A stretch of DNA of 63,470 nucleotides, the filler included, from Perkinsus chesapeaki ATCC PRA-425 (taxonomy: Eukaryota > Protista > Perkinsozoa): NCBI GenBank assembly GCA_013115145.1. It is 9 parts of 9 records of this genome, joined end to end, with 100 filler letters (N's around TTAATTAATTAA, not from the genome) between each part and the next. Parts side by side here need not be neighbours in the genome. Positions count along the whole stretch, not along the records: positions 28,766 to 47,343 come from JAAPAO010000661.1; 8 more parts are not named here. One strand, written 5' to 3'. Of this stretch, positions 4,156 to 47,343 are shown one piece after another. A program made the translations under genes and the position numbers. Positions within the stretch are counted from its first letter, which is position 1; the number at the start of each line of letters is the position of its first letter. The notes beneath the pieces were generated by a model that saw nothing but the letters and a program-made list of their open reading frames with translations, had not been told where the DNA came from and searched no databases.

Positions 4156-7100
4156 TCAGGCATTCGTCTTATCCTTCGCCTCTTTCCGAAGGAGCCCCTC
4201 GATTTTCCTGCACTTCTCTTCTCCATAGAGCTCGACGTTTCTCGCATCAGAGCCTCCGTGCTGTAAATGCCTCTCGGCCTCTTTACCCGTCATGACAAGC
4301 ATGTTGCCTGTAGTAGGCCTGCCAAGAGGCGCTGAGCCTTCTTCCCATTTCCACCACATCAGGACCATACCGCCCACTTGACCTGATAGGCACTTCCCAC
4401 AAGAACCAGTCTGGGTTCTACCAATCTTAGCGAGAATATCCTTTCATACAAAGCGAAGGCGGATCTTGTTCAGGGATTCGTGGAATCAACACCCCCGATA
4501 TGAACGAATTTAATGTTCCTCTGCTAGCCTGGCAATCCTTTTCCTTAGAAAATGGACGCTAGGAAGTTTTCCTATCAAACTACACCTTTTCCCGTGCAGG
4601 TTTGACAAATGTCTTCCCCAAAAATGACACTAAGCATTCATGTTTGACACAAGTGACAATATGCAATCATTTCTGACACACCCTTGATTTATCGGCTCCA
4701 AGTTTGACAGCATTTGCACCAAGAGTGACAATGAGCGGCCAAGTTTGACATTCTGAGAATGAACATGCACACAGCGCAGGATCCACCACAGAAGGTGGTG
4801 CAAAGCGCTGAAAATGTCCTCTTAACCCTAGTAACGTTTTCGACCCTCGCGAACACACTTCCACGAGGCTAAATCGAGGCCAGACTACACCTTGTCGAAA
4901 GGTGTAATCTAAATCCGCCATTGTCTAGGTGTGCTCCTAGATCCGGGACATTATTCTTGCGATTACCCTCCACCACTCATCCTGTCTTATATAGCGATCG
5001 CAGAATTGAGCAGCGAGCGGAGTATCCATCTCACCTGAGATGACGCTCTTGCCGCCACAGACATCTGCGTAGATGTAGTTGGCTTCCTTCAGACTGACGT
5101 AATCGTCCAGGAGTCTATGTGGACATTGAGGACCAACCGCTTTCCGAATCTTCTCCTGCATTTTCCTGTACCTGAAAAAGATACGGTATAACTTCCACCA
5201 TCCAAGCCGCCTCGAGATATCTAGCCTACTGTTTCGGTCCGACAGCCTCCATTGCAGAGGGGGACATTGGCTGGCCTGCCAACTCGGTTAAAACATGAGC
5301 TGCGACGGCATTGCCGAAGATTGCTGGGAGCGGCGCAATAACAGGTAGAATTCTAACCTGATCAGTAATCAGACATAATCCTGATTAGTGAATACTTTCA
5401 ATGAATTCGGCCCTAATAAATGAAGCATATCAACGAAATAAGCTGTCCCTAACAATCTCATTCCTAAAGGAGATTGAATTCAAAAAAACGGCTCGAAAAT
5501 ACCACTACTGTTTTAGCTTCAAAGGGACATATCGAATCAGATTCCAACTCACTCTGAACTTCTCAAGTGTCTGGAAATCGCCGGGGTTCTCCTCCTGGAA
5601 ATCCTTCAATGGTAGCAGCCCTCGGGTAGGTTTCTGCGGTACAACACTCATCGCTTTACATCCGGTTTACACAGTAGGCAGCGGGGGGGCGCTACCTCTG
5701 TGGAGTAGATGGCGTATATCTTCTTCAAATCTTCATCGCCACCCTAAAGAATACGACATTTCAACTCCGGCTCGAAGCCCGGGTTTTGCGCCGGAGAAAA
5801 ACAGAAATGTAAACAAGAAGAGTAAGTGCGGGGCAGAAGAATTGTCAACACTAGATGTTGGACAATGAGCCGACCTTCCTGTGCGGTGCGAGCTGTCTCT
5901 CTCAGCAAAGGCAGCGATGACGCCAACATTTCGTTCCTCTTTCTTGAGTGCAGACCCGCGTCCCAACTCCTCAGCAGAGAGCTGGAGCAAGTAGCGAAAT
6001 TATCGCTGGAAATTGCTAAGTGATAAGATATTACTTAGCAATTTCCCAAGCTACTACAAATAGAGCTCGGGAAGCCTCATTACAACAATCCACTTAACGA
6101 TCCTAAGAGGGAAGCGTTCGGAACGGTGACGCATATATCAATGTAATTCTCAACGTTAAGGTTGGACACTGTCCATCATACTGTCCAATGGACAGTATGA
6201 TCCCTAAGTACCCGTGGCAATAGTATGTATATCCAGTTTGGTTAGTACCTCTTTAGCACGAACTCTTTGTTTCACCGCTTTGCATAGTTCATCTTCCTTG
6301 GTGTTATTTAGGGTCGTTATCTTCACCCTAGTTGGGTCGCATTTACACGCTGCTCCACCAGAGCTCACTACTTTGATGCTGCGAGTTGCGCAGTAACTAT
6401 AGAAAGAGAATAAGGCAAACAGTTGAATAGATGAAAAACAAATCAGAGAGCAGGCGAATGCATACCGGAAATCTCGAGAGATTTGCGTATTACAATATCA
6501 TATTATTCGATTCTCGATACGTAGCGGATATGCCTGCCATTCTCAGCATCACGTATTTGAACTCCGACAATTCGTCGAATGCCATTCAAGCGAGCTACTA
6601 TCCGATTGAGGTAGGTGAAGGTGTAAAAGTAGATCGCCCCGTTAGTTGTTAAAATAAAGCGCATATCGTGGGGCTCGTACCCGGGACGTCCGCAGGCAAT
6701 CGCAGCACCTTAACGTATTGAGCCACAAAGAACCGATTTCTAAGGCAATAATCTCACATGCATTTCCAGTTTCATGATGTGAGCGAATGAAAATCATAAC
6801 TACTCATAATACTGCTTTTCCTACTGTACAGGGTGTCCCAAAAATGTGCTTTTTTGAACAACTTTCTCAGGAGGGCGAATATTTCGACGACACGTGCGAC
6901 GTTCGAAAGCCCTCGAGAGTGACTTTCTAACGGCATACGGCCCATGATGATATTTCTATACATCATTTTTCGTGATGCTCTCCCTTATCCTAGTAACCCC
7001 CACCTGCTCCACTACACATTACTGTAAGAGGTCTGCCTTAGTCGGAAGATTGTCGATTGCATCTATGACAAAATCTGGCTTGAAATCCGCAATTAGTGAA

Positions 7101-28765: not shown

Positions 28766-28934
28766 TCTTGGTTTTTACTAATCTGTTCTGGGCTATATTA
28801 ATTTGATCTTGGCTTTTACTAATTAGATCTTGAAATGGTGTAGTAAAGGGAATTTGACAAAGTAGACAGGGGTTGTGTTGGTTGGAAAAGTGCAGGGTTC
28901 CCAAGTTGGGAATCCCAACTGTCGGTTCTTGCAG

Positions 28935-29987
28935 GTATTTTCCGACCAAGCGCTGAAGTTCGTCGAGAATGATAATGTACAGTTGAAAATTGCAATAATT
29001 GAAATTGGCAGTTTAATATCTTCAGGTTGTCTTCTTCAAATTCGATGGCATTGCTGGTGGACAGTTCAAGAAAGGTGCTGATAATTACGCCGCTGAAGTG
29101 GACTCTCTTCTGAGATTGGTAAGATGATAATGAATAATGCAGATATCGCTTGGGTATTTATACACGTTTACCAAGTTTCATGCACAACCCGACTAACGAC
29201 ATTGGGAAGAGCGCTGGTCGTACTTAGGCATCAGCTCCGCGTGTTATCTATAGATTTCGCACACACTCATCATTTGATGAATTGTATTCTTTGTATATTT
29301 GTAGATATACTAGAAATGCGTGGTGGAGAGGATAAGCATGTATCCGAACCTGGAGGAACCATCTCTAATGGTTTTATAGGAATATATCTCATTGTATAGC
29401 ACTTGCACTAGAATCTAGTATCTTTAATATCTGATATTAATATTAAATACTATTACTAATAATAAATAAAATGCATATACATAATAGTAAAACATAACTG
29501 ATATCATTCCTTAATGTTATTACTCCTAATAGAGCAGCAGATGGCCTTCGGGAAGCCCGGAGTTTGGCGGCCACGAATTCGAGTCTTCGGTTTACCTTAT
29601 AGATGCACCATTTTAGCAGAGTCGTATGATATCAATAGGATCACTCTTCTTTAAAACATAATTGGCTCCTTCCTCACTAACACTCAATGACTATCCTTTA
29701 TTTGAGGATTTTAAATAAATACTAACAATACTAATAATTCTCCTTCTGTTCATGTAATAGATTCTCGATATCCGGAAGCGCGGTAAAGGTAACATCACCT
29801 GGATCAACCTTACAATAGGAACGTGGCCAAGTCCATATTGGCTCATCTACGGAGACAGTAGGTGTCTTCGGAAATTGGCTGGAAGGGTTCATTGGTCCTA
29901 TTAGGTATTTGGAAAGATGGCTATGATGTCGGACTGGCGGGTTGGGGCAATCGACGAGATATGCATATTACTGAGCGAGACGCTTCA
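28935..29987 (+). CDS. Fragment of a bacterial-type putative glycoside hydrolase (alpha-galactosidase / clan GH-D-like), four visible exons
   Basis: In-frame splicing gives VFSDQALKFVENDN-VVFFKFDGIAGGQFKKGADNYAAEVDSLLRL-ILDIRKRGKGNITWINLTIGTWPSPYWLIYGDS-IWKDGYDVGLAGWGNRRDMHITERDAS. I recognise the KFDG / INLT.GTWPSP.WL / RDA pattern from bacterial proteins (from memory, not searched). Confidence 0.6.
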
Positions 29988-30229
29988 GTGAGTGGAGGCA
30001 TTATTATTCACACTTAAATAGGTGGCACTGCTTTGGTTCTCGTCCTCTACAACATATTCCCAGTCAAAGTTAAATTTCTGCACGAATGTTAGAGCCCGAG
30101 GGTTTTACGCCTGAAAATTCACTTCGAAAGAGCTCAAAGTTGAACTCTACAGCTGCTGCGGTATGCTTCTATTAACGAGAACTCAGAGTTGCATCATTGG
30201 AAGTTTAGTGGTTATCATTTTTCCTACTC

Positions 30230-31076
30230 GCGGCCAAGCCTGGTGATGTTCGCAAGCCCAGATTAGTAGCCGACTTCTCACCATGTAACTCACAGTTGCC
30301 GGTATTGCAGTCGAAGACGTCATGTTGGCTAAGCCAACTTGGCTTTGAGATGTGTGAGTCCTGCGTTCATCGTTGGTTATCTGCCTTCTATCGTATAAGA
30401 CTAGATGTGCAACGCCTGCTCTATATGCACTCCGGTACGACTGACTCCAACGAGCCCGACTTCGTGTCGACAAGATTGAGCTTAAGTTATGACCTATGCA
30501 GGATCTATGACCATGTCACTTTGCTTATGAATACCTCTCCTATCTGTGAACATGTTCTTGACCACCAATCGGGAAGCTCAACGTCTACCTTCATAACTGT
30601 TGATGCTCTAGCCTTTCAAAGGCTAGAGCATCAAAATTGGTTATAACCAAATTGGTTATACCCGCTCTACTGGTTTATTGGTGAAGTCGGTAGATGGGAA
30701 CCCGATACCTGACTTACATGCTGCGAGACCTGTTGCTATCGAGAATATCCGCAAAGCCTTCTTAGCTCATCATTGGCAAGCGCTACGTGATCGTTCAGTT
30801 CAACAGTTGGGTCATCAACCGTCTAGGCACACCCAACCTTTGGCTCCTGATTCTGCTGTTCTTATTCGTTATAGACCACGTAACAAGTGCGATGTTGGGG
30901 TTCATCTTGGCCACATTGTAACTGCGGATGTCTCTCCAGATGGATTTTGTCGTCGTTATCGTGTAAGGTCCACATCTGGCAATGAATCGACCGAGAATAA
31001 TTGCAATATTTTCCCTCTTTTGTCTCATGCTTCAGAAGACTGTGTCCTCACAAGGGGAGCGTGTTGTAGGAAGTAG
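30230..31076 (+). mobile_element. Degenerate Bel/Pao-like pol 3' region
   Basis: KPRLVADFSPCNSQL (RT-like) and IRKAFLAHHWQALRDR..VLIRYRPRNK..GHIV...PDGFCRRYRVRSTSG...NIFPL (DUF5641-like end), followed by a polypurine tract. Confidence 0.65.
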
Positions 31077-31326
31077 TTCTCTAGTTGCTGTGAGGCCTTT
31101 CTGGTGTCTTCTGGTATTGTTGGCTAATTGTTATTGTGCTGCCTCGCGCATGGCGCGAGATGTGTGCGCGTGTATGTGTACGCGCATACATGTAGAACCC
31201 TCAGTTCAATTGCCCCAATGAACGTGCAATTATGCCTTAGAGTAGTTACAATGATAATTGTTATTTAAGACCTTCCCCCTGCTCTAAGTCATTGATCCAA
31301 CGGCTGCCCTTGCGTTATATACAACA
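31062..31326 (+). mobile_element. LTR (265 bp)
   Basis: Ends TGTTGTA...TACAACA form a perfect 7-bp inverted pair. Preceded by the purine tract AAGGGGAGCG and followed directly by TGG (PBS-like). Confidence 0.75.
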
Positions 31327-32356
31327 TGGTTGGGAACAGAACCGATGATCAGACGCCCGAATCCTCGAATAATATCTCAGACTTCGTAGCTGAAGCTCGA
31401 TGGGCGCCTTCATCCACTCTGTACGATATTAGTCTCTTTAGGTTTACCAGAATGTAGTGCAGCGAAGCATGCTGATGCCGATTGCTAACCTGATGTTGCA
31501 TGGCATACTTCAAAGCCGCGCCAATGAAGCTGGATATGTACGTCTGCTGGTAGGAGAAGGCTTCATTGATGCTGTTTTAGTTGCTAAAAGAGAGCATCTC
31601 CGATTTGAAGTCGTTCAAGACTGAAGTCTTCACCTACTTCCTCAGCGGTGTTGGGCTCCAGGAGCTGTAAGCAGGGATTCATTCAGCCTTACTGAGATGG
31701 TTCTTTCGAGACGGAGATGTGATCGAATATCTTTTACAGAGTTCGTGTTCTTAAGAAAGAGGAAACATCCAGGCCATTTTTTAGGAGCAATGAATTCCTC
31801 TCAATGCGGCATCTGAGCGTCTCCGAGCGCTGCCGGTTTACCGATTGGGAAGGTGCGGCTCATTAGTATCGAGTCCTCATTCGTTTTTAGAAATGTACTC
31901 GAGTCGTAAAATATTAAGTAGTTACTTGGTTGTGAAGTTTACGAGTGATGTAGACGAAGAAAGTATCGATGAAGGTACATCCAACCGGAGGAGCTTACAG
32001 ATGAGCATTGGAGAGTTGTTGCCGAAGGTGCTCAATTTCATAGAAGTTTCCAGTCTGTATTGCGGCAAGTTCAATGGATCGGCGGAGATCCAGAACAAGG
32101 ACAACTGTAAGATATCTTGCGCAGCAGCCTTCGTGTGAATTGTGCCATTCCACGGTCAATGCCTTCAAACCACAAGTTGCTTGTTATAATATTGCCGCAG
32201 ACTTGCAACTTTTTATGGGGCGCGAGCTCTAGATTTCAAGCCGATTGGATTATGCTGACAGCAGCGTTTTCTTCCCGGCCTGGGCTGGCAGGTTGATCTT
32301 TCATTGCTGATCCAAATTATTGCGTCCTGCTTGATGATCCGTCGTGGACTGAAACC

Positions 32357-33061
32357 ATCTACTGAATTGGAACCGTTTCTAATCCAGCGGTGGAGGGACT
32401 TCAGATATTCGGACACTGGAAATGCGCTCAGGTACGGGTGGGCGGCATGCAATGACACAGCTGGAGTCTTTGGACTTCGCAATCCGACCACATTTCAGAG
32501 GAAAGCCAGAGTTACATTAAGTAGGATAGAAAAGCTGCACTATTCCTAGCGTATCATTCAGGCAGCATGTGGGGAGTTCTTGGCAACTCAACATGGCAGA
32601 TATCACCGCTCTTCGAGTCTCCCGCTTTTCCCATTGAATCCAGCGTTGTACTACTCGATCGTGAACTGAGTTTAACAGTTAGTCCTCTCGGCGTGCTGGC
32701 CTACCGTGCCAGCAGGATCTCAAGTTGACTTGTTTTTAGTATTGATGAGTGGTGTTTTGTGTTATCTCCGAGAGTTACCAATACAAGAATAATACCGCAT
32801 CGGTAACGATGTCATCCAAATACGGCTACGTGGTGTACGACCAACGAAACTTAGAAGGAAATGGTCGTTGACGTGGTGTACGACCAACGAAACTAAGAAG
32901 GAAATGGTCGTTGATATACACTCTTTATGACGACTCAACCTCATAAAAGGATCACTGTCACTTACCAACAGTCACACTCGCCGGATAGCAAACAACAATT
33001 TCTAAGTAGGCATCGAGTCTGAACCCGAAGACGCTATTGATGCCACCTTCGAGTCATGGAC
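32357..33061 (+). repeat. ~690-bp segment duplicated at 46566-47241
   Basis: Near-identical direct copies. This copy has an extra 42-bp tandem unit; the other has a 14-bp insertion. Confidence 0.92.
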
Positions 33062-33508
33062 TGTTTTGGTGATTTGTACTATACCATCGTTTTTCCTTCT
33101 TAGACAAGGAAATTCCTGTCTAAGCTCTGTTTCAGTGTATCTAATCATCACTCCTCGTGGTTCCTGCTGGCTGAACCTCCATGTGAGTTGTTCTTCCCTA
33201 TCGGCTCGGTGGTAACGAGTCGAATTGATTGAATCTTTCTAGTGCAACTTGCTGTATATCTTCAACACGTAAACTTCAGTTTTCCTCCTTCATTTGAGAA
33301 TACAACACTTGCATCGGTAGGCATATGAAACTTTCCTTAAGGACAATAAGGCGAAGTTTGCGTGTCCAGAGCTAATCTCTGCGAAATTGATACTGACTAT
33401 GTAGTAGACCGAAAGGCTGTTAGTCGTTACATGATAATGTAGATGGAGATGTCGTGCTACAGAATATTCGCCAGTCTCGCACACTGAGGTCGAGGATAGA
33501 CAACACTT

Positions 33509-34251
33509 CTACTGCGATACCGTCTTGTTGTACAAAATGATAGTTTCCGTGACGCTTCCGAAGTCGATAGCTTCCAGTTTCGCCAACATGTTCCAATTTA
33601 AACGATCAGTAGAATGAGTCTCCAGTGACAGCCGTACATTGGTCAACGATGTGTTAAAACGGCCTTCATCAGGACTAACGTAACCGTTAACTTGGATTGA
33701 GCTGTGAACAGAAACATTGTCCTCTTCGTAGCGAACACTGCATATTCCATTAGAAGTAGCGTTAACCAACCAGAATGGGTCACGCCCACCAGCCTGTGAT
33801 TGGGGCGTACTCCAACATAGGCGTCCATACCAAAGTCTATCTGTCTGCCGGACGCTGTCGCATATTCTCCGTCATTTTTTATAGTAGGTAGGATGAAATT
33901 AATGCTCACCTCTACGCCCTTCTTTGCCATAATCTGCTTGAAAAAAGTACGCCCTTGTCCTTCAACGCGAACTGTAGGAAAGCCTGTAGCATTGTCAGGA
34001 GGTCCGACCCCGCAGGCAAAGTCCAGGGAGCCTAAAAGGCTATCAGGGAAGGGGTATCCGAGATGGTAACCGCCAAGTAGAACTTCAGCGTCTCCTTTCA
34101 CGAAGAAGCAGTTTCCATTGTGAAACATTCCATCTTGCTGGGAGCAGTTATTAGGGCTGTCAACCAGATAGTTTGTAATAGGTTGAGCAAGAGAGATAAC
34201 CACACACCCGCACACCAACGCGAAGGTTCCGATAGTCGGGTAGATCATCAT
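33509..34251 (-). CDS. Secreted hypothetical protein with one frameshift near 33780 (pseudogene or assembly error)
   Basis: Signal peptide MIYPTIGTFALVCGCVVISLA. ORF 33643-34251 continues as GGRDPFWLVNATSNG...KTVSQ in the overlapping frame. Confidence 0.6.
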
Positions 34252-35989
34252 TTGGTATGAAACAGCTGAAGGGATGCCTATCGCTGACTGTGCAAGTAAG
34301 CGCCACTTTTGACTAATACAATCTAGAAGGGGGCAGATTTTTCATAGTAACAACCAATCGGATTGAAGAGAAAGCGAAACACGAAGCTTAGGTGACTCGG
34401 AAATGAGCTCTCTGGGGGAGCATGCGTGTAGCACGCCACTCATACAACAGATCGATATTCTGCAAGCTCGAAACGCTATGAGAGAGCACTAACTGCCTGA
34501 ATATTGAAGCATTGAAAGATGATATCACATTGCGTGGAGAATCGCCGAGCTTACCCCCAGGAGAAGGTTGAGCAATGCATATGGTCAGCGTCACGTTTCG
34601 CGTTGCGCGACGCCCCATCTTTTCGTCAGCTATATCCGCCACTGGCGGACCGCTTAATCTTACACATTTCTAACAAAACTATCCGACAGTATTCTGACAT
34701 GTATCCTTAGAGAAGAGATATAAAGCCCACGATCCATTTCCAACTATCGCTATTCGGCCGGCTTTTAGAATGTGAAGTAGTTCATAATGCGACGCCTACT
34801 CTAGTAAACTGCAATACGACCGGGCAGCTGCGTGGACCATATATGCCTTTAAGAAGGGGATATTTGGTTCTAAAAGGCCATATAACTTTAGACTGAGGAT
34901 ATCGTCCTCAGAATCATCAACGACAGATGACGTGGGACGTAAGATTGCGGCTACATTCCGCACAGGTGATACACTTCAGGTAAATCACTCTTTGCATCAT
35001 AGCTAAGCGAACACCGCGCATGATTCTTGCGTTGCTCTAGGCGTGCATCAAGTGGTGCTAGAAATTCATAGAGGAGGCCTGCGAGTGAACAATGGCCTAC
35101 CCTTCCTGTGAGAATTGGGAAAACCATTTCATGGGTCTTTCAAGTTACGAGCTCTGAACCTCGGCTACATAGGCGAAGTCCGCGCACGCAGAAGCCCCAT
35201 GATTCCCTCGCCCTCATTTCCACTGCCAACATCTCCCTACCTCCTACTTCATCGTCCCCGTAAAAAAATCGTGCTTCAAACTTTCCGAGCAGTAACCCCA
35301 GTACTGCGCCCTGTCTGCTCAAGCTTAGCGGCGCTAACCTAGTTGCACCAGGCTGGTACAACCATGCGCTAACTCACACAAGCTGGAACAAGCTGGATGG
35401 AGCAGCATGTATTCCGCAGTATTACGCCGAATTACTCCCCATCGAGCAAGTGTTACATGTTAACCAGAGCATCTACTCTGGTGGCAATGCTGTATAACCT
35501 CCATGAGCAGACTGAGGAGGTTAAAGCCTAGTAGTGCTGGTGGTCCTTCCGATGGAGTAGCAGCGCAAGTCCGGGTACTGATGCTAGTCTCAGTCGAAAT
35601 CGACCGGGTCGGAATTGACCCGGTGCCGGTGTTGTTCATAAAAGCGCTTCTTTTCCGAGGAGAGTGGGAGAAGATGAGACAAGTGGTGTCAGTCACCGGG
35701 TGACGCACCGCTTGCTCATCATGTGCCAGTGTGCTGCCAGTGTACATCACAATAGTCACAGGACTATGCAAGAGTGAATTCGGCATGACAGGCGACACTG
35801 ACACCTCCCCGAACCCGAATCAATAATACAAGCAGATGGCGCCTAAAGATGGCTCACTATCTGTGTCATTTCTTAAGCCATCCGCAGAAGTTTAAGCCAA
35901 CGACGTTGCAACTCAGCTTTGCAACACCCCGTTCATGAACAACGGGTGGATATTTCCTTGCGATTGTGTCACGTTTGGATAACCCCTCT

Positions 35990-36510
35990 AGGGCAATAGC
36001 CTATTGACTCGTACGAAGTTGCACTTCCAGTAGGACTCCTTCACGACCTAATCGTGTAAGCGTATGAACGTTTCTGGGGCTTCTGTGAAGACTCTCTGAG
36101 ATCCACATCAATGTCAGCATTAATAAAATTCCAACATAAGTGTAACACACGTAACAGAAAGCTCGATTTGGTGAGACTCAGCGTAACGGATATTCGGGTT
36201 TGACCAAGTTTGTTTGACCAGTATGAGAGCCTCATAATGAGACACTTTGTGATTTGCCTTACTGAATCAAGCCACGGTTCTCTAGAGTACTAAAGAGCTA
36301 TCACGCTTGCAGCAATTCGTTATCTAGCTGAGTCGATACCGCATGTCATATGCGGTATATGAACCAAATGGTCTTCAAGATAAGAGGGTTGTTGACGCGC
36401 TTCACCTCCATAAATGATACCATCATTATGATAGATCAGTTTTCTGAAGCGACGGGAGTCTGTAAAACACCCGGTCTTTCTTCTGCATCACAACAAGGCG
36501 ACACGACGAT
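35990..36510 (-). pseudogene. Inverted 3' fragment of the small secreted protein family plus its downstream flank
   Basis: The reverse complement reads RLVVMQKKDRVFYRLP and continues in homology with about 38100-38560. Confidence 0.8.
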
Positions 36511-36699
36511 TAGACTCTGCGGAAGAGCCCCACTGGAAGTGCAACTTCATATAAGCCGATTGTCCTGACTTACATTCACCTCGCTTTACCTTGGCTACAT
36601 TCGGATAGTAGACGACAAACTCATCCCGGTAGTACTGGAGTACAAAATCGTACTTTGTGGTAACTTGTGATGTCACAGTTGCACGCAAAATATCGTTAA

Positions 36700-37760
36700 A
36701 GGCTTCAACTTTCAGCGCTGCTTTGGATGCCTTGCCCTACTGATAGCTCATCCGATTAATTGTCGTTGTGACCTCGTGACTGGCCCAGTCGCTTTACTTG
36801 AGTGCGTCAGTGTGTATCCGAATTGTATCGATAATCTGTATCGAGCACTGTTGAGCTAACGTGAGTCATGTCTCACTTGTGGTAGTCCACTATCTCTGGG
36901 TTTCCAGCGTTACAATATTAAGGTAAGGCAGCAAAGCACTATATCATTAAGAGAAAAGGGTGAGAACTCGAGAGTAGTTGGAAGAAATCGAGTACCTTAG
37001 ATACTCCACTCGGATACTACTCGAATTGTGAAACTTTTCGTATGAATGTGGAGAGCAAGGAAGCAGCTTGTCCCCTAACTTTTGAAAACTGCAGCGGGCC
37101 ACTCGTGGCCTTCGACGCTTTGACTAACTCCTCATCGTTCGTGGAGAATAAGACATCATTTTGGAAACTACTACTTAACTCGTTGACAGTGATAGGGCAA
37201 GGTGAGGTTGCCAGCCTCGATACTTATTGAAGTTCTTGTTCCTAGTAATTGCGTGACGGTGGCGCCATGAGTGATAGACAGTCCTTCAAGTTCATATCTG
37301 GTGTCAGCGATCCCCTCCTCGCTTTCAAGAGATCGAGAGCGTAAACTGACAAAATCAAACTTCGTCTACTGTAAAACGTTGCCGATCGTCTAATTTCGAG
37401 ATTACTCACTCACAGAGCGCTTGTTTTCTGAACACTGTGTAGTGTACAGTTTAAACAAAGAGGGCACAGTCCCCTTAACAAGCGTCACGCCGCTGCGCCA
37501 TGGTGACACTTCGCCTGGTTAAGGTAGTGCCCTCCTACGTGAGAAGCTGTGAATTGAACACTGCTTACATCACATTTCTCGATTCTTTGCTCCGAATGTT
37601 GAACTTGTTCCCGAATTCCGCTCCTTAGGCGTCTTGCCGCTGCGCCATGATTGCATTATACTTGGGTTGTGTGTGAAAGAATGGTTTAAACATCCGCAGT
37701 TCCGTGTATACGTGGATGCATATTTCTTGAAGGGAAAAGGATTCCAATTATACTTCGTTG
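36700..37760 (+). repeat. Upstream duplicon, paralogous to about 39150-40185
   Basis: Colinear similarity with scattered substitutions over about 1 kb. Confidence 0.88.
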
Positions 37761-37776
37761 GCAGTTATTTGCAAAC

Positions 37777-38175
37777 ATGAACGTTATCATGCTTATCGCC
37801 GTCACGGTCATTGGTCAGACCGTTCCAGACCCAATGTATCTCAATGATAAGTATGTTCGCTGTGCACCGTTTGAAAACGCGGTAGTCAACAGTATCGAGT
37901 TCTTTGGTAATGGCTCGATGGAATTGGTTAGAAGAAGAGAAGAAGCGCGTCCTCAGAAATATGAATGTGTGTATGGAGCGCAAAAGATCGGAAATTATAT
38001 CCAAGTCACCGTTGGTGGTGCCGACTGCAACGCCTTGGTAAGGTCGTTCCCTAACACTCTGGACTACACTTTCCTCATTATGAGAGTGATAGAGACCAGT
38101 GCAGGGCGCCGCCTTGTTGTGATGCAAAAGGAAGACAGGGTGTTCTACAGACTCCCCTTCCCACCAAAATGCTGA
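37777..38175 (+). CDS. Small secreted protein, family member 1 (132 aa, 4 Cys, intronless)
   Basis: Intact ORF with hydrophobic N-terminus MNVIMLIAVTVIG; two close paralogs in the window. Confidence 0.8.
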   Translation: MNVIMLIAVTVIGQTVPDPMYLNDKYVRCAPFENAVVNSIEFFGNGSMELVRRREEARPQKYECVYGAQKIGNYIQVTVGGADCNALVRSFPNTLDYTFLIMRVIETSAGRRLVVMQKEDRVFYRLPFPPKC

Positions 38176-40193
38176 TCTAATCATAATAATGGCATCACTT
38201 ATGGAGGTGAAGCGTGTCAACAACCCTCTTGTCTTGAGGACCATTTGGGTCATACGCCACATATTATATGCGAAATCGTCTCAGCTAGATAGTGATCTAT
38301 CGCAAGCTGTTTAGTACTCTAGAGAACCGCTTGTGGCTTGATTCAGAGGGTCAAACATATTTAGTAATAATTGTAACGAATATCTCTTACGCTGAGTTTC
38401 ACCAAATTGAGCTTTGTGTTACGTGTGTTGGACTTTTCTTGGGATTACATTAATGCTCATATTGATGCAGGTCTGAGAGAGTCTTCAAAGAAGACCCAGG
38501 GCCGTTCATACGCTTACGCGATCAGTCCGCAGAAGAGGAACTACATCTAAGCCGATAGGATTTTGCTCTGGCCTACATTCATCTTGCTTTTCCTTGGCCA
38601 CATTCGGATACTATCCGAATGCGATGCGTCAAGGATAATTCTTGTCTATAAGTAGAAAGGAATTATCCTTGACGCATATTGGTACTATCAAGCACTCCTG
38701 GGATTCTGCAGTGTTGTGTGAAAGTCAGTGATGTACTACTTGTAGATTAAGAAAACAACATAACAACATTGATAACAGGAATTCCTGTCACAACCAGTCG
38801 GCTCGAACCATCGAACTTTACCGCGATATGAGAGTGTAACGTAACGGTACAACCTGAGCGGTTACTAGTCAGTGCCAAACAGTGTGAATCACACTGGGGG
38901 CTTAGCCATCACACAGTGTGATGGCTAAGCCCCCAGTAACTGGGGCCCAGTTCACGATAGGGCAGAGTGAAGGCAGTTAGGGGCACAGGGGTTTTACCCT
39001 TTTTTGCCAGGGCAATATGAATATTTCCCGATGGTATTGGTTTTCGTTAGCTCTGGCGTTTTAGCCTTAGACAAAATTTTCAGTGTTCTAAACTTGAGGC
39101 CGAAAACCTTATCACTTCATTGAACACTCAATCAGTATTGCTGATTCAATAATATAAGGCTTTAACTTTGAGCGCTCCTTCGAATGCTTTGCACTACTCA
39201 GCACTCATCCGATCAATTCTCGCTGTGACCTCGTGACGGGCCCGTCGCTTCACTTGAGTGCATCAATGTGTATCCGATGTGTATCGATCACTGTTTAGCT
39301 AACGTAAGTCATGACTAACATGTGGGATTTTACTGTCTTTGGGTTTCAAGCATGACAATGTTACAATAGTGCGGTGAAGCGCTATATCATTAACAGAGAA
39401 TAGTGAGGAATCAACAGTAGTTGGAAGAGATTGAGTATCTCACATATTAGCAGCGACGAAGCAGCTTGTCCCCTAACTTTTGGGTATTGTGGTGGGCCAC
39501 TCGTTGCCTTCGACCCTTCGCCTAACTCCTTTCCATCGCTCGTAGAGACTAAGACATCATTTTGGAAACTATTACTCAACTCGTTGACAGTGGCCCAGCA
39601 ACGTGAGGTTGCCACCCTCGATACTTATTGATGGCCTTGTTACTAATAATTGAGTCGCGATGGCGCCGTGAGTGGTAGACAGTCCTCCAAGTTCATACCT
39701 GGTGTCAGCGCTCCCCTTCTTGCTTCCAAGAGATCGAGAGAGTCAACTGACTGAGCCAAACTCCGGCTGCTCTCAAACGTTACCGATTGTCTAATTCCGC
39801 AACTACTCATTCGCTGAGCGCTTGGTCGCCGAACACTGAATAGTGTACAGTTTAAACGAAGAGGGGGCAGTCCCCTTCACAAGCGTCACGGCGTGACGGT
39901 CACGCCGCTACGCCATGGTGACACTTCGCCTGGTTCGGGTAGTGCCCTCCTACGTGAGCGACCGTGAATCGAACACTGCTTACATCCTGTTTTCTCAATT
40001 CTTTGCTTAAAATGTTGAACTTGCTCTCGAATTCCGCTCCTTAGGCGTCGTGCCGCTGCGGCATGGTCGCACTGTACTTCGCTTGTGTGTGAAAGAATAG
40101 TTTATCCATCCGCCGTTTCAAGTATACGTGAATGCATATTCGATGAGGGGAATAAAACGTCGAATTATTCTTCGTTGGCAGTTATTTGCAAAC

Positions 40194-40595
40194 ATGAATG
40201 TCGTGTTTTTTATCGTCACGGTCATTGGCCAGACCGTCTCAGATCCAGCGTACCTCAATGTCAAATATGTTCGCTGTGGGGCGTTCAACAACGCGGTAGT
40301 CGACACTATCACGTTCTTTCCAAGTCTCTCGTTGCAACTATTAAGAAGAAGGCGAGCAGAAGGCTTTCCAGATAAGAAGTATAATTGTCTGTATAGAGCG
40401 AAAAAAGTCGGAAATGATACCCAAGTGACCGTTGGTGGTGCCGCCTGCAACGCCTTGATAAGGTCATTTAATACGACCTTGGACGACACCTTCCTATTGA
40501 TGAGAGTGACACAGACCTATAAAGGGCGTCGTCTTGTCGTGATGCAAAAGAAAGACAGGGTGCTCTACAGACTCCCCTTAGCACCAGAATGCTAA
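40194..40595 (+). CDS. Small secreted protein, family member 2
   Basis: MNVVFFIVTVIGQTVSDP...RLPLAPEC; start placed by alignment to member 1. Confidence 0.8.
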   Translation: MNVVFFIVTVIGQTVSDPAYLNVKYVRCGAFNNAVVDTITFFPSLSLQLLRRRRAEGFPDKKYNCLYRAKKVGNDTQVTVGGAACNALIRSFNTTLDDTFLLMRVTQTYKGRRLVVMQKKDRVLYRLPLAPEC

Positions 40596-41299
40596 TCTAT
40601 CATGTCGATGGTATCATTAATAGAGGTGAAGCGTGTCAACACCCCTCTTGTCTCGAGGTCCGTAACCTTTTTTCTAGTTCACAGGGCCACTTGTGCCCTA
40701 ATTATGAGGTGTCTCGTACGAGTCGATATTATTTTTATGGTAATTGTCACGAATATCTATCTTTATTGCTTCTATCATCGTTCTATATCGCTGAGCTTGA
40801 TCAAATTGATCTCTGCGTTGCGTGAGTTAGACATATCTGAGGACAATATCAGCGCTGAGATGAATGTAGGCCGAAAAAGTCTTTTCGAAGGACCAGGGAC
40901 CAAGGACAACACTCTCATATGATTGATGTGTGGAAGAATTCCATTGGATGTGTAAGTACGCGTAACCGTTGTCCGATATAAGTTTCCGTAATGCCGAAAG
41001 GGTTTTTCCCAGCTTCATTCTGAGGGTTCAAGGTTGCCAATTCCAGGCAATCAATTTAGACTGTCTGAATTGATTGCCTGGAATTGGCAACCTTAGCTTG
41101 GCATATAAAAGAATGCTTTGAGCCTTTACACTGTAAAGTTCACAGTTTAAAGTGTACGGTATTGCATATATGTCGGAGAGAGTGCGAGTCACAGCAGATG
41201 TAATTCAATAGTTTGATGTAATACAAGCTTAATCTGGTATACGTAATGAGAAGGAACGAAAATTACAGAACTTGAATCACCAGCCCCACCATTACTGCT

Positions 41300-41445
41300 A
41301 TGGACTTACGCTCCACCAAGGGCCCTACTGATTTCGGCCATTCCATCCGCTTTTGCCATCATTTCCTTCATACCACCCTTTTCCCAAATCATTGCTTGGG
41401 CCACCCCTCTCACCGATATATCTCTTCCCTCTCCCTTATTTCCTA
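41300..41445 (-). pseudogene. 3' fragment of a Gly/Trp-rich protein paralog
   Basis: Encodes KGWYEGNDGKSGWNGRNQ*; homologous to 45470-45600. Confidence 0.65.
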
Positions 41446-44092
41446 TCTCGAAATCATTGAAATGTTTCCTAATCGTAATGGAGTGTAATTATTACACTGT
41501 ATTACAGTACGAAGTCCGAAATTAGACCGAATTGCTCTCCTGAGACCATCTTGGCACTAACTTGGGTTTACTTCTCTTGAAACATCGGGATTCGGGAATT
41601 AGGAAGCTGAGACTCGACTGGCACCGAAATGGTCGAACCGAGCCTGAAGTTCAGGTCCTTAAGGCAAAGTTGACGCGTCGCCAGTAAGTACAGCATTTCC
41701 CGGTCATGCTTCGTACGTCCGCACTGTTATTTCCGAGTGTCCGCAAGCAAATACCCGGTGCGTCACAAATTGTGAAAAATTGTTGTGACTCACAATTATT
41801 TCCGACCGGCACGCATTTGTCCGACTCGGTCATCTGCATTATCCGACAGAGACAATCATACTAATATCCGTTTCCCCAACTTGGACAATTCAATGCTCCC
41901 CGAAGCTTTGTTTTTTTGTGGAGGAAGTGGTGGGTTTCGAGAGTTCTCAGGCTCAACCCGCGCCTCTCCGCAGGGGAGCAGCTCGACGCGGGGCTCAATT
42001 AACGACTTAGGGTTGACTAACTACTGATACGATCAGCCTGATAGATAACTGACAGCACTTAGAAGAAGATAGATGCTAGATTTCTGACGCTAGTAGCTAG
42101 GAAGGCTTCAACTGCGAAAAAGTCAGGCCTATATCTTGGACAGCATTCTCCGCTGAGTGGGCAACCATTGTTTAGTGGTAACACCGCTCTGTATGTTTAA
42201 CATACTATGTTGTATACAGAGCGGTAAATAAAAATTTGACAAAATAAATCAAATTTTGATTATCAAAACAATAAAATCTGTACATAAAAATTCGACATAC
42301 AGTGTGTCAAATTTTTACCCACCCTGAGGGTTACAATGGACCTTTAAAGGTGGTGCAAGGGGACAAATCTTGGGCCTTTTGGCTATCATAACTGAAGTCT
42401 CGCATGACTTTTTTGTCCTCTCCGACTTACATGAGGGATTCGCGTGGCCCTGTCCTGGCAATGACATGCTACCGCATTAATAATCTGCATTGCCACCCTC
42501 CTCACAGTGCGTCTGGGCCGCTAATTGAGCATCTCTGGTGCTTCCCGTTTACTGGGAAGAAACTCTGGGATGTAGAGATGAGACCCACATGGTGGGCCGC
42601 ACCATGGTATGTCGTGTGCCCGCGACTCTCTTATGCCATATATAGTTATGTCTGGAGCACACTTGTGCTCGTTGCCCATGGCCCTTGGGTCACGAGTGAA
42701 CCGAGGGGTATCAAACAACTTTGAGTCCTACAGTTGCATTCGCACGAGATCTGGTTACTACAATCGGCTGGCGTTCAAGCCAAAAGTTCTAAGCCTTTGA
42801 TCATAAAAGTTCGAGTTCCTCTAGCGCTTGCGGGGAATGAGAGACAGCGTCTTTTGTCAAAAGACGTGTCCTGTCAATGACAGGCCACTGCGAAGGACTC
42901 ACTGCTAGTGAGTCATTGTGGGGAAGCTAGCGAAGGTTTGTCTGTGGAAACCCCTCGCGCGCTGACACGGGGGCTGCGACACCGCTTTGCAGCTGAGGGC
43001 TGACCAGCCAAAATTCAAGAGCGAACCTGTGTACAGCGCAAAATGCATGAGGCACTAGGGTGCGGGCTGGAGCCTAGTGTTCGCGATGACTACGCTTGCG
43101 TACGCGTGCTTCGTATTGTGCGGCGGCCGCACTGCGGCCTTCGTGGTGCCGGCTTCCGGAGCGACGCGTGCCTCGTTCCCGGAATTTATATAGAGTTAGG
43201 AAGCAGCTTCGGAAGCTGACCTTTCTGGGAGCTAACCTGTATCAATGCCTCTTCTAATCACTATACCTGTCATACTTGTCACCAATGCTGTTGAGTGCCA
43301 GAAAGCGCCGCCCAGCAAGGGCTTGTAAGTGTCACGGTCTCAGTTCATGAACTCTGAAGCATAACACACCAAAGGAAATTAAACCAGAGCAGCCAATACT
43401 ACGACCCGGGCGTCCTGGCCCGGGACTGCATGATACAGGTACAGTCTTTATCGATAAGCGCACTATCTGCACTTGACTTATACACGCATGCACAGTCTCC
43501 CTGCGCAACTGATCGGTATTGCCAATATCATATTGGGCCTCAAGGCTGTAAAAGGAATGGCGAAGGTTTAATACAACACACAATCGAGGGATATAGTAAT
43601 TTCTCTCGATACATAACAATATATGGAAATATCAGTATTATAGCAAGATGGTAACCACAACATTTGGACCTACAACATAAGCTTGGCAACGCTTGCGTCG
43701 CCCAATTCACCAACATGCTGTCTCAGACAGCCTGTCTGCGCCTTCACCTTCTAATCGTCGATGACTTTGAACGCGCCGGTCCCAATTAATAAAATTCGAC
43801 GGGTGCCTGAGGTCACTAATCATCTGCCATTACATGTTAACTGTTTGCAGATGGCGCGGCCGCCCGAAATCCCGTTGTATCGGAAACGAACAATCCGCTC
43901 CGCAGGCGTCGTGCAGTTGCGCCATGGCGTTGCACTTCGCTTGGGTAGTGCGCTTGCCAGTAAGATAATACTTTCGCCGTTCACCATTTTAGCTTGAAAC
44001 TGTCAAGCATACGTTATTAACATAACGTTATTGCATATTCGATGAGGGGAATGAAACGTCGGAATATACTCCGTTGGCAGTTATTTGCAAAC

Positions 44093-44488
44093 ATGAACGT
44101 CATGGTTATTATTGTCACGGTCATCGGGCAGACCGTTTCAGATCCCATATATCTCACTGATAAATATATTCGCTGTGTATCGTTCGACGATGCGTTAGTT
44201 TACAGTATCGAGCTCTTTGGTAATGGTTCGATGGAATTGGTTAGAAGAATAGAAGAAGCGCGTCCTCAGAGATATGAATGTGTGTATGGAGCGCAAAAGG
44301 TCGGAAATTATACCCAAGTGACCGTTGGTGTTGCCGATTGCAACGCCTTGGTAAGGTCGCTCCCTGACACTCTGGACTACACTTTCCTGATTATGAGAGT
44401 GATGGAGACCGGTGCAGGGAGTCGTCTTGTTGTGATGCAAAAGGCAAATCGGGTACTCTACAGACTCGCCCGCGCACCAGAATGCTAG
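44093..44488 (+). CDS. Small secreted protein, family member 3
   Basis: MNVMVIIVTVIGQTVSDP...RLARAPEC. Confidence 0.8.
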   Translation: MNVMVIIVTVIGQTVSDPIYLTDKYIRCVSFDDALVYSIELFGNGSMELVRRIEEARPQRYECVYGAQKVGNYTQVTVGVADCNALVRSLPDTLDYTFLIMRVMETGAGSRLVVMQKANRVLYRLARAPEC

Positions 44489-45494
44489 TCTATCATAATG
44501 ATGGTATCATTAATAGAGGCGAAGCGTGTCAACACCCCTCTTGTCTCGAGGACCTCAAAGTTGAGGTTTTGGGGTCAGGCTCTGATTCAGCTCAGCTAGA
44601 TAATGAATTACAGCGATTCGTAACCTTTTTCTAGTTCACAGGGCCACTTGTGCCCTGATTATGAGGTGTCTCGTACGAGTCGATATTATTTTATGGTAAC
44701 AAATTTATTTTTTTTGTTACGAATATCTATCTTCATTGCTTCTATTATCGTTTTATATCGCTGAGCTTGATTAAATTGATATTTGCGTTGCGTAAATTAG
44801 ACATATCTGAGGAGTATATCAGCGCTGAGATGAATGTAGGCCTAAACGAGCCTTTTCGAGGGACCAGGGACCAAGGACAACACTCTCGTATGATTGATGT
44901 ACGGAAGAATTCCAGTTTAAGTGTAAGTACGCGTAACCGTCTTTCACGAATGCCGATGGGGGTTTTCTCGGCTTCCATTCGTCAAATAACTTGGTTTCTC
45001 TTGGCTACATCCTGATAGTAGACAACTATTATCAGTAAAACTTTGATATGTTTGAAACGAATGAGACTAAGCGTAGATAACGTAGCTTTTTCATAGCAAA
45101 AGCCTCTTACTTCAGCTCGTATGACAGACAGAAGATGTTCGACGGCATGGACTCTGTCGTCCAAGACTTTCAGATCGTAATGAGTGTGATTCAGGCGATT
45201 GTGAACAGCCAAGATTGCCAATTCCAGGTGATTCAGACTGTCTGAACCTGGAATCAACCTTAGCTTGGCGGTGCGTGTAAAAGAACGCTCTGAGCTTCTA
45301 CAATTCGAAGTGTACGGTATAAAGATGTCATATATTTTATGTTGCATATATGTCGGAGAGAGTGTAAGTCAAAGTAGATGTGATAACGCAATACAAGCTT
45401 AATCTGGTATACGTAATCGGAAGGAACGATAATTACAGAACTTGAATCACCAGCCCCACCATTCCTGCTGTGGACTTACGCGCCACCGAGGGTC

Positions 45495-45960
45495 CTACTG
45501 ACTTCCGCCATTCCATCCGCTTTTGCCATTATTTCCTTCATACCATCCTTTCCCCAAATCATTGCTTGGGCCACCCTTCTCCCCAGTATATCCCTCCCCC
45601 TTCCCTTCATACCATCCTTTCCCCAAATCATTGCTTGGGCCACACTTCTCCCCAGTATATCCCTTCCCCTCCCCTTCATACCATCCTTTCACATAATTAC
45701 CCTTCCCGCCGTAGTCGTTCCAATAGTGAGGTGGGGGAGCCCACGGCATAGGAGAGTTCCATTCCCAATTCGGTCCACTCCAGCCTTCCCAACCTCCTTG
45801 CCATATCCGGACCCCTCAGAATAACCCTTGCCGGGATTCGAACTTGCGCCCTTCCCTTTCCCTTTTCCTCTGCTTAACGCATCCTCTGTAGCACACAATG
45901 GGTCTGTCCCGATGAGAGAAGATAGGAGCTAAGCTAAGACTACGAAGATGATGCAGCTCT
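45495..45960 (-). pseudogene. Secreted Gly/Trp/Tyr/Lys-rich repetitive protein, disrupted
   Basis: Signal-like SCIIFVVLA*LLSSLIG with a damaged ATG, a GKG-rich part, a frameshift near 45800, then 69-bp repeats encoding KGWYEGKGEGYTGEKGGPSNDLG. Confidence 0.65.
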
Positions 45961-46534
45961 ATCGAGTAATTACTGGCTCATTAATAGGCATTCCTTCCCT
46001 ATTTCATCCAGTGCACGCCCGATTAATCTAACGTGGTTTAGAGACGAGAGTTGTGTTGTGCTTGGTAACTTCATTCAGACCTCCCCCGTGCAATAAGGAT
46101 ACCGCCTTCGGTCTAATCGTCATTGCCATGCAGTTGATTGGTTCTGTCTACCATCATTTTTTTTCTTCATATAAGTGAGGGAGGTTGGCGGATCTGCTTG
46201 GATGCTTTGTTGACTACCCGGTGCGCAGTCCCGGCTAATGTCACTAGCTGTAGAGCTAGGTGCATGATTGCACACACCATCACGTGCGATCTCGCCTGTT
46301 CACGGTTATTTCATGGCCCAAGGGTGGGAATTGTCGCGTTGACAGTGGGAGGGACTCTGATCATCGAAGCGGTGGACATCGGATTTGCATCTGCTTAACG
46401 CATCCTCTGTAGCACACAATGGGTCTGTCCCGATGAGAGAAGATAGGAGCTAAGCTAAGACTACGAAGATGATGCAGCTCTATCGAGTAATTACTGGCTC
46501 ATTAATAGGCATTCCTTCCCTATTTCATCCAGTG
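45870..46534. repeat. 144-bp identical direct repeat (45870-46013 and 46391-46534)
   Basis: Base-for-base match by eye. Confidence 0.92.
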
Positions 46535-47241
46535 TAGTGTTGTCTCAATTAGCAAATCACTAGCAATCTACTGAATTAGAAACGTCTCTAATCCAGCGGT
46601 GGAGGGACTTCAGATATTCGAACACTGGAAATGCGCTCAGGTACGGCTGGGCGGCATGCAATGACACAGCTGGAGTCTTTGGACTTCGCAATCCGACCAC
46701 ATTTCAGAGGAAAGCAAGAGTTACATTAAGTAGGATAGAAAAGCTGCACTATTCCTAGCGTATCATTCAGGGCCTGAATTTCAGGCAGCATGTGGGGAGT
46801 TCTTGGCACCTCAACATGGCAGATATCACCGCTCTTCGAGTCTCCCGCTTTTCCCGTTGAATTCAGCGTTGTATTACTCGATCGTGAACTGAGTTTAACA
46901 GTTAGTCCTCTCGGCGTGCTGGCCTACCGTGCCAGCAGGATCTCAAGTTGACTTGTTTTTAGTATTGATGAGTGGTGTTTTGTGTTATCTCCGAGAGTAA
47001 CCAATACAAGAATAATACCGCATCGGTAACGATGTCATCCAAATACGGCTACGTAGTGTACGACCAACGAAACCAAGAAGGAAATGGTCGTTGATATACA
47101 CACTTTATGACGACTCAACCTCATAAAAGGATCACCGTCACTTACCAACAGTCACACTCGCCGGATAGCAAACAACAATTTTTAAGTATGCATCGAGTCT
47201 GAACCCGAAGTCGCTATTGATGCCACCTTCGAGTCATGGAC

Positions 47242-47343
47242 CAGGGTGTTCCGTTTCCATTTCGCGCAGGGTTTCATTTCGGAAATTTCCGGAAATTTCC
47301 GTTGGAAATTTAAAAGTTGGAAATTTCCGGAAATGAAAATGCG
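47242..47343 (+). mobile_element. Probable DNA-transposon terminus (CAGGG start, GGAAATTTCC subterminal repeats), truncated by the contig end
   Basis: Begins exactly where homology to 33061 stops; several copies of the palindrome GGAAATTTCC. Confidence 0.6.

Follow-up and report, generated by a model that had tools for sequence, protein, structure and literature searches.

The piece analysed here, positions 28766-47343 (18,578 bases), is the whole of contig JAAPAO010000661.1 from Perkinsus chesapeaki (assembly GCA_013115145.1); positions are those of the window, the full 63,470-nucleotide stretch of joined parts in which the contig is embedded. In protein searches, the proteins of this contig are orphans. 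A family of small open reading frames (ORFs; ~130-155 amino acids) is found at 37777-38175, 40128-40595 and 44042-44488, as tandem and inverted copies inside duplicons of 2.4-4 kb. Read depth at these duplicons is ~5x that of the flanks, and the small-ORF family has no Pfam matches, nor was a homologue found outside the contig. The small-ORF region also has an inverted partial copy (36048-36500 versus 38110-38525). A 69-nt unit is repeated in tandem at 45532-45669 (96% identity), with a third copy at 41362-41430 in a paralogous duplicon, and the contig end, at 47277-47334, carries a cluster of GGAAATTTCC-type palindromic repeats.

Upstream of the second small ORF lies the 22-base palindromic scar that is the focus of this analysis, which reads CGTCACG.GCGTGACG.GTCACGC and is built on the 8-mer CGTCACGC. 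The other copy of the 2.4-kb duplicon carries this 8-mer only once at the paralogous site, and when the two copies are aligned globally (77% identity), the scar is the sole 14-nt gap. If an 8-mer W is written as w1..w8 and the complements of its bases as c1..c8, the pattern can be generalised as W[1-7]+rc(W)+W[2-8]. The long form thus consists of two overlapping odd palindromes with the single bases c8 and c1 at their centres, and represents a net gain of 14 nt. A first-pass annotation had reported the long form at this position, a single W near 37483 and the same fixed geometry on unrelated 8-mers; the sequence and the duplicon alignment bear out the first two of these observations, and the third is matched by eight exact cases in the contig, on different targets (Table 1).

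The regions 39024-40657 and 41264-44141 are covered, with 0-1 differences, by contigs of the likely source sample and of an independent study, which also cover 38500-38992 with no difference at all. The scars are therefore real and are common to both samples. Misassembly, which had been named at the outset as a way in which the focal observation could fail, is contradicted by contigs of two independent samples that cross the focal scar itself without a single difference. The first-pass annotation had also proposed a check of reads for an allele carrying an element; among the contigs from the two samples there is neither an element-bearing nor an empty allele, contigs being a form of data that drops rare variants.

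Scar architecture and abundance

A scan for the exact 22-mer architecture with any 8-mer identifies eight sites in 28766-47343 (18.6 kb), against a chance expectation of ~7e-5 sites by our own estimate, which is based on 14 constrained positions. The same architecture is absent from twenty shuffles, and unit lengths of 5-7 and 9-12 give no exact matches in this interval. Imperfect copies are also in excess: those with one, two and three mismatches number 4, 6 and 18, versus 0, 0 and 0.9 in shuffles. Altogether, the contig contains ~33 non-overlapping sites with three mismatches or fewer, ~25 of which are decayed. Palindromes with a one-base centre and arms of at least 6 nt are enriched ~10-fold (43 observed, 4.3 expected), whereas even palindromes occur near expectation, with no enrichment. 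Clustering beyond that produced by intergenic density is not significant (~3 close pairs versus ~2 expected).

The details of the geometry are equally restricted. Neither the no-offset 8-8-8 form, W+rc(W)+W, nor a form with uncomplemented centres occurs in the Perkinsus loci, and in 38 of 51 core matches both centres are the complements of w8 and w1. The classical 16-mer footprint, with one complemented base on each side, is absent from the window's contig.

Two of the sites in the contig are more complex. In the compound scar, the odd palindromes with 8-nt and 22-nt arms share a 4-nt microhomology, an arrangement consistent with two nearby events, one of which had long palindromic tracts. The decayed scars at 39598 and 37197 occupy the same position in both duplicon copies, and this scar is therefore older than the duplication.

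Table 1. Scars and unscarred counterpart sites in contig JAAPAO010000661.1 (window positions).
Feature	Position	Strand	Basis and remarks
Focal scar	39884..39905	.	w1-w7, c8..c1, w2-w8 on CGTCACGC; ~220 bp upstream of small ORF 40128-40595
Unscarred paralogous site of focal scar, W once	37483..37490	.	Duplicon alignment
Exact scar on W = ATTCAGGC	46765..46786	.	Architecture scan; second before/after pair
Unscarred paralogous site for 46765, ATTCAGGC once	32556..32563	.	Repeat 93-97% identical
Exact scar	28898..28919	.	Architecture scan
Exact scar, the sole exact one within an annotated gene span	30324..30345	.	Architecture scan, gene annotation
Compound scar	38880..38952	.	Exact 22-mer at 38931-38952 after odd palindromes with arms of 8 nt and 22 nt
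Exact scar	42247..42268	.	Architecture scan; 1-mismatch scar at 42191, 56 bp upstream
Exact scar	43118..43139	.	Architecture scan
Exact scar	43717..43738	.	Architecture scan
Old decayed scar, 2 mismatches	39598..39619	.	Counterpart 37197-37218 (3 mismatches) in other duplicon copy

Scars at other Perkinsus loci

Additional loci were located via one distant paralog and one Perkinsus olseni homologue. Two exact and six one-mismatch scars lie in a further P. chesapeaki contig (L002, 20.8 kb). The P. olseni locus is represented by four records from three assemblies. Three haplotypes can be told apart, L004, L005 and the near-identical pair L006 and L007, and these contain 9, 14 and 5 exact scars. 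The total is 38 exact 22-mers in 72 kb of Perkinsus DNA, with none at the other unit lengths tested, and there are no exact scars in a 50-kb animal locus, met with by chance, that serves as a control.

The 35 distinct exact targets have no sequence in common. They show a weak bias, in that position 2 is T, or position 7 is A, in 28 of 70 instances versus a background of 26% (one-sided p = 0.007), and only eight of the 35 targets have both. When scars with one mismatch or none are considered, 50 of 52 fall outside annotated gene spans, which cover 51% of the DNA (p = 1e-13), and scar density is ~1.5 per kb of intergenic DNA.

Not all products are of the +14 type, although this single product accounts for 38 of the 45 exact scars that fit the model described below (~85%). 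In a +20 variant, two full 8-nt tracts are joined via a 2-nt microhomology. At L005:12405, a left tract of 12 nt and a right tract of 4 nt make up a +22 variant that is missing in the L006/L007 allele. A +29 variant is also present in the Perkinsus loci, and like the others, it is rarer than +14.

Several other features of these loci were recorded. Three long palindromes in the P. chesapeaki contig, at 41030-41094 (arms of 32 nt), 30600-30634 (17 nt) and 38624-38677 (25 nt), have no recognisable second target copy, and the first two have a one-base centre; they could be footprints with a deletion, or the result of another process. In P. olseni, a 509-bp MITE at L005:11543-12051, which has a TA duplication and ends in terminal inverted repeats (TIRs) that match perfectly over 48 bp, is missing in the other three records. 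It is the only polymorphic element seen and belongs to a superfamily other than the 8-bp duplicators. Since it looks like a recent Tc1/mariner-type insertion, cut-and-paste transposition appears to be active in this species. Near L004 ~5990-6010 (alignment columns 1641-2304), 611 nt present in the other haplotypes are absent, and 5-7 nt of filler derive from just upstream. This haplotype difference was considered as a possible element, and inspection of its termini identified a plain deletion with short templated filler, a break-repair signature distinct from the scars.

Direction of change

Two before/after comparisons had been taken in the first-pass annotation to show the direction of change. 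The two paralog pairs in the window are insufficient by themselves, because slippage between the 6-7-nt direct repeats could delete exactly 14 nt. A third duplicon copy, considered as an outgroup for 39884, begins only at ~43894 and does not cover the site. The direction is instead given by the three P. olseni haplotypes, among which the commonest indel length is 14 nt (10 blocks in the alignment). The L004-private scars at 5756, 5830, 6124 and 6947 each correspond to a single W in both other haplotypes, and one L006-private scar corresponds to W in L005; the remaining scars are common to two or all three haplotypes. Losses cannot account for all of the private scars, which lie on different branches, and the change thus runs from W to scar, in a process that is ongoing. 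Related sequences carry the target once both in the two paralog comparisons within the window and in the five clean allelic comparisons from P. olseni.

The L004 branch has accumulated 141 private substitutions over 1974 aligned columns, versus at least four, and perhaps ~10, private scars. In terms of bases added, scars are of the same order as substitutions on this branch, at least four scars being equivalent to 56 nt. A further observation concerns the targets themselves: at L004:5756, 5830 and 6124, the outermost target base, w8, differs by a transition from the empty L005/L006 alleles, whereas w1-w7 never differ. The transition may reflect chance, CpG decay or a feature of the process.

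With the polarity in place, the earlier description of the scars as new insertions of fixed size, rather than ancient decayed hairpins, can be refined. The +14-nt change is derived, but nothing foreign is inserted, as the local 8-mer serves as template for all 14 nt. Its size is not strictly constant: 14 nt is the modal gain, with rarer products ranging from +10 to +29 nt, and while the long form is the derived one, old decayed copies (for example 37197 and 39598) exist as well.

A model for scar formation

What the sequences show directly is the geometry of the scars, with its fixed 8-nt unit and 1-nt offset, together with their polarity, variants, target bias and distribution. From the sequence comparisons, each 22-mer is probably a donor site that a cut-and-paste DNA transposon of hAT-type chemistry left behind and that was then repaired. 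We infer the existence of this transposon, the superfamily to which it belongs and the steps of repair; hAT is the most likely superfamily, and another hairpin-forming DDE family that makes an 8-bp duplication is a less likely one.

In this model, an element would insert at an 8-bp target W and duplicate it, resulting in W-element-W. Upon excision, the transposase would nick one base into each flank and leave a hairpin on each, such that the left flank would consist of w1-w7 joined to c8 c7..c1, and the right flank of c8..c2 joined to w1 w2..w8. Host nucleases would then open both hairpins far from the tip, on the 3' side. The resulting 3' overhangs, c8..c1 and w1..w8, would be perfectly complementary, because both derive from one duplicated target, and would anneal, after which flaps and gaps would be trimmed and filled. 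The product would always be w1-w7, c8..c1, w2-w8, which adds 14 nt and retains nothing of the element. As long as the overhangs overlap, in-register annealing would give the 22-mer wherever the nicks fall, and a uniform outcome would thus be predicted. A few elements hopping along a line of descent could leave a trail of scars in neutral intergenic DNA, and the intergenic placement would be expected if only harmless hops survive.

Several lines of evidence are in keeping with hAT chemistry. Two copies of the 8-bp target remain at every site, each without the base that would have adjoined the element (w1-w7 ... w2-w8). In the Hermes biochemistry of Zhou and colleagues (2004), the hAT nick is reportedly offset 1 nt into the flank. 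hAT elements make 8-bp target duplications, with a target preference of nTnnnnAn (PMC10368747), and the target bias observed here is in weak agreement with that preference. Enzymes of the hAT, Transib, RAG and MULE types excise through a hairpin made on the DNA that flanks the element (PMC5499845). The odd palindromes of the scars match Ac/Ds footprints, whose hallmark is palindromic P-nucleotides with the complement of the element-adjacent base at their centre; microhomology is used, and arms may reach 20 nt in yeast (PMC5873905). Where annealing fails, the hairpin model predicts further products; the variants fit this prediction, and no other explanation accounts for them. The +20, +22 and +29 variants show that tracts are often at least 8 nt long, which makes annealing over an 8-nt homology natural.

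Other evidence is unfavourable to a hAT origin, namely the missing element and transposase, the single dominant product, the lack of a classical 16-mer and the very high scar density. No hAT element, as defined by TIRs and an 8-bp duplication, was seen in the 72 kb of Perkinsus DNA, which is a small sample of the genomes, and Pfam scans of 13 ORFs and gene products detect no transposase domain. An element-in-place allele is likewise absent from the three P. olseni haplotypes and two read sets. Among 8-bp direct repeats beside inverted termini, there were only two leads, both false: one proved to be part of a large inverted gene duplication, and the other lay inside a TA-flanked MITE. A few wandering cut-and-paste copies can leave many scars, so the lack of an element in 72 kb is not fatal to the model. 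The uniformity of the junctions is a separate matter. Footprints of hAT elements are heterogeneous, with 28 types among 128 events in Candida (PMC5873905), and the junction heterogeneity expected from end joining is not seen in the Perkinsus scars. This uniformity marks them as a variant, without excluding hAT chemistry.

Alternative explanations

It may be that a different enzyme leaves an equivalent hairpin-and-anneal scar, whether this is the transposase of a MULE, a Merlin, a P-like or an unknown transposon with an 8-bp duplication, or a domesticated transposase without TIRs that carries no mobile element and attacks intergenic DNA. Such an origin would account for the lack of a hAT element in the 72 kb, and there is no shortage of candidates: MULEs form flank hairpins and 8-9-bp duplications (PMC5499845), Merlin (8-9 bp) and P elements (8 bp) match the duplication size, and two Merlin-like DDE ORFs are conserved in P. 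marinus, with TIRs and duplications not found for either (PMC8101967). However, the size of the Muta1 hairpin (43+43 nt) suggests no offset, whereas the scars need one of 1 nt, and Muta1 excisions are mostly precise. Moreover, it is hard to see how a transposase that lacks an element could first duplicate the target, and the weak nTnnnnAn bias would favour hAT. The involvement of another transposase thus appears unlikely, if still deserving of some weight. A more unusual proposal, and one that we consider unlikely, is that a lineage-specific enzyme with no conventional transposon repeatedly attacks Perkinsus intergenic DNA and writes templated 14-nt palindromes; one of the TIR-less DDE transposase genes reported as conserved in P. 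marinus is a candidate for it. If this were true, the enzyme would be an endogenous mutator and the commonest source of indels, adding about as many bases to intergenic DNA as are changed by point substitution.

Explanations that invoke no transposase are harder to reconcile with the data. Template-switch events during replication yield forward-reverse-forward copies of adjacent sequence, and the layout of the scar is typical of such a product: fold-back synthesis could copy w1-w7, then 8 nt off the complementary strand, and return one base in. The long odd palindromes at 30600-30634 and 41030-41094, which lack a recognisable second target copy, are also compatible with this process. Template switching is nonetheless very unlikely, because nothing in it sets an 8-nt inverted tract and a 1-nt loss at both joints. 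It would be expected to generate inverted tracts of variable length, set by microhomology, but the unit is 8 in all 38 of the 38 exact cases, and the palindromic target bias and the 12+4-nt variant are left unexplained. The constant gain of 14 nt might alternatively bring to mind tiny mobile palindromic elements of fixed size inserting at these sites. Copies of a MITE-like insertion should share sequence and have their own termini; instead, each of the 35 distinct inserts derives from the target at which it lies, and the 14 nt differ per site and are fully predicted by the local 8-mer, making this reading highly implausible. An assembly or sequencing artefact has next to no probability. All four assemblies used do come from related projects, but the sites are reproduced exactly in contigs of an independent study, and scars are common to haplotypes that have their own point differences, decay with age and are depleted in genes.

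Comparison with known systems

A close parallel for the proposed hAT-type excision is found in the footprints of Ac/Ds and other hAT elements in plants, yeast and Candida, in which the 8-bp duplication lacks the element-adjacent base (PMC5873905). Palindromic P-nucleotides, joining at microhomology and the possibility of long arms are further points of likeness to Ac/Ds (PMC5873905). The Perkinsus product differs in being ~85% uniform, with both P tracts running through the whole duplication and merging. In addition, the Perkinsus scars are a fixed, genome-embedded population for which the element is deduced, and not an experimental donor site. RAG and Transib hairpins are not known to have a 1-nt offset and typically give even palindromes, along with a 5-bp duplication and diverse junctions. 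What RAG V(D)J coding joints and Transib would share with the scars is a flank hairpin opened off-centre, leading to palindromic addition (PMC5499845).

A catalogue of excisions in rice is similar in approach, in that excisions were inferred by comparing related genomes (PMC4423477). The 94 rice excisions are heterogeneous, with deletions and filler DNA, and eight are 'perfect' (PMC4423477); the Perkinsus scars, unlike these, are uniform and identify themselves without comparison. Template-switch mutation and quasi-palindrome correction also result in an inverted copy of adjacent sequence, but such changes have no fixed unit length, offset or target bias. Finally, the introner elements of Amoebophrya, a related alveolate, resemble the scars in combining inverted repeats (8-20 nt) and direct repeats (3-5 nt) with no family-specific sequence, although they differ in being larger introns within genes (PMC7789003). 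A tie between these introners and locally templated scars is a matter of speculation.

Literature searches identified no account of scars like these in Perkinsus, and none of a class of stereotyped footprints occurring genome-wide elsewhere. The Perkinsus scars are best read as footprints of hAT-type excision that are unusually uniform and abundant: a new variety of a known class.

Implications

As a rule, the history of cut-and-paste transposons is lost, because the footprints they leave are small and varied and cannot be recognised. In Perkinsus, a genus of oyster and clam parasites in the sister lineage of the dinoflagellates, the putative footprint is stereotyped, so that a single genome should suffice to read each past visit, down to the exact 8-bp target and a rough age given by decay. 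If the excision reading is true, the scars are a dated record of past transposition, and hop rates, target choice, local hopping and selection against insertions would become measurable. The scars are also a quantitatively important class of mutation, 14 nt being the commonest indel length in one P. olseni intergenic region, and with every scar a further perfect inverted repeat arises close to genes. The uniformity of the repair products, in turn, is informative about hairpin opening and end joining in the Perkinsus lineage.
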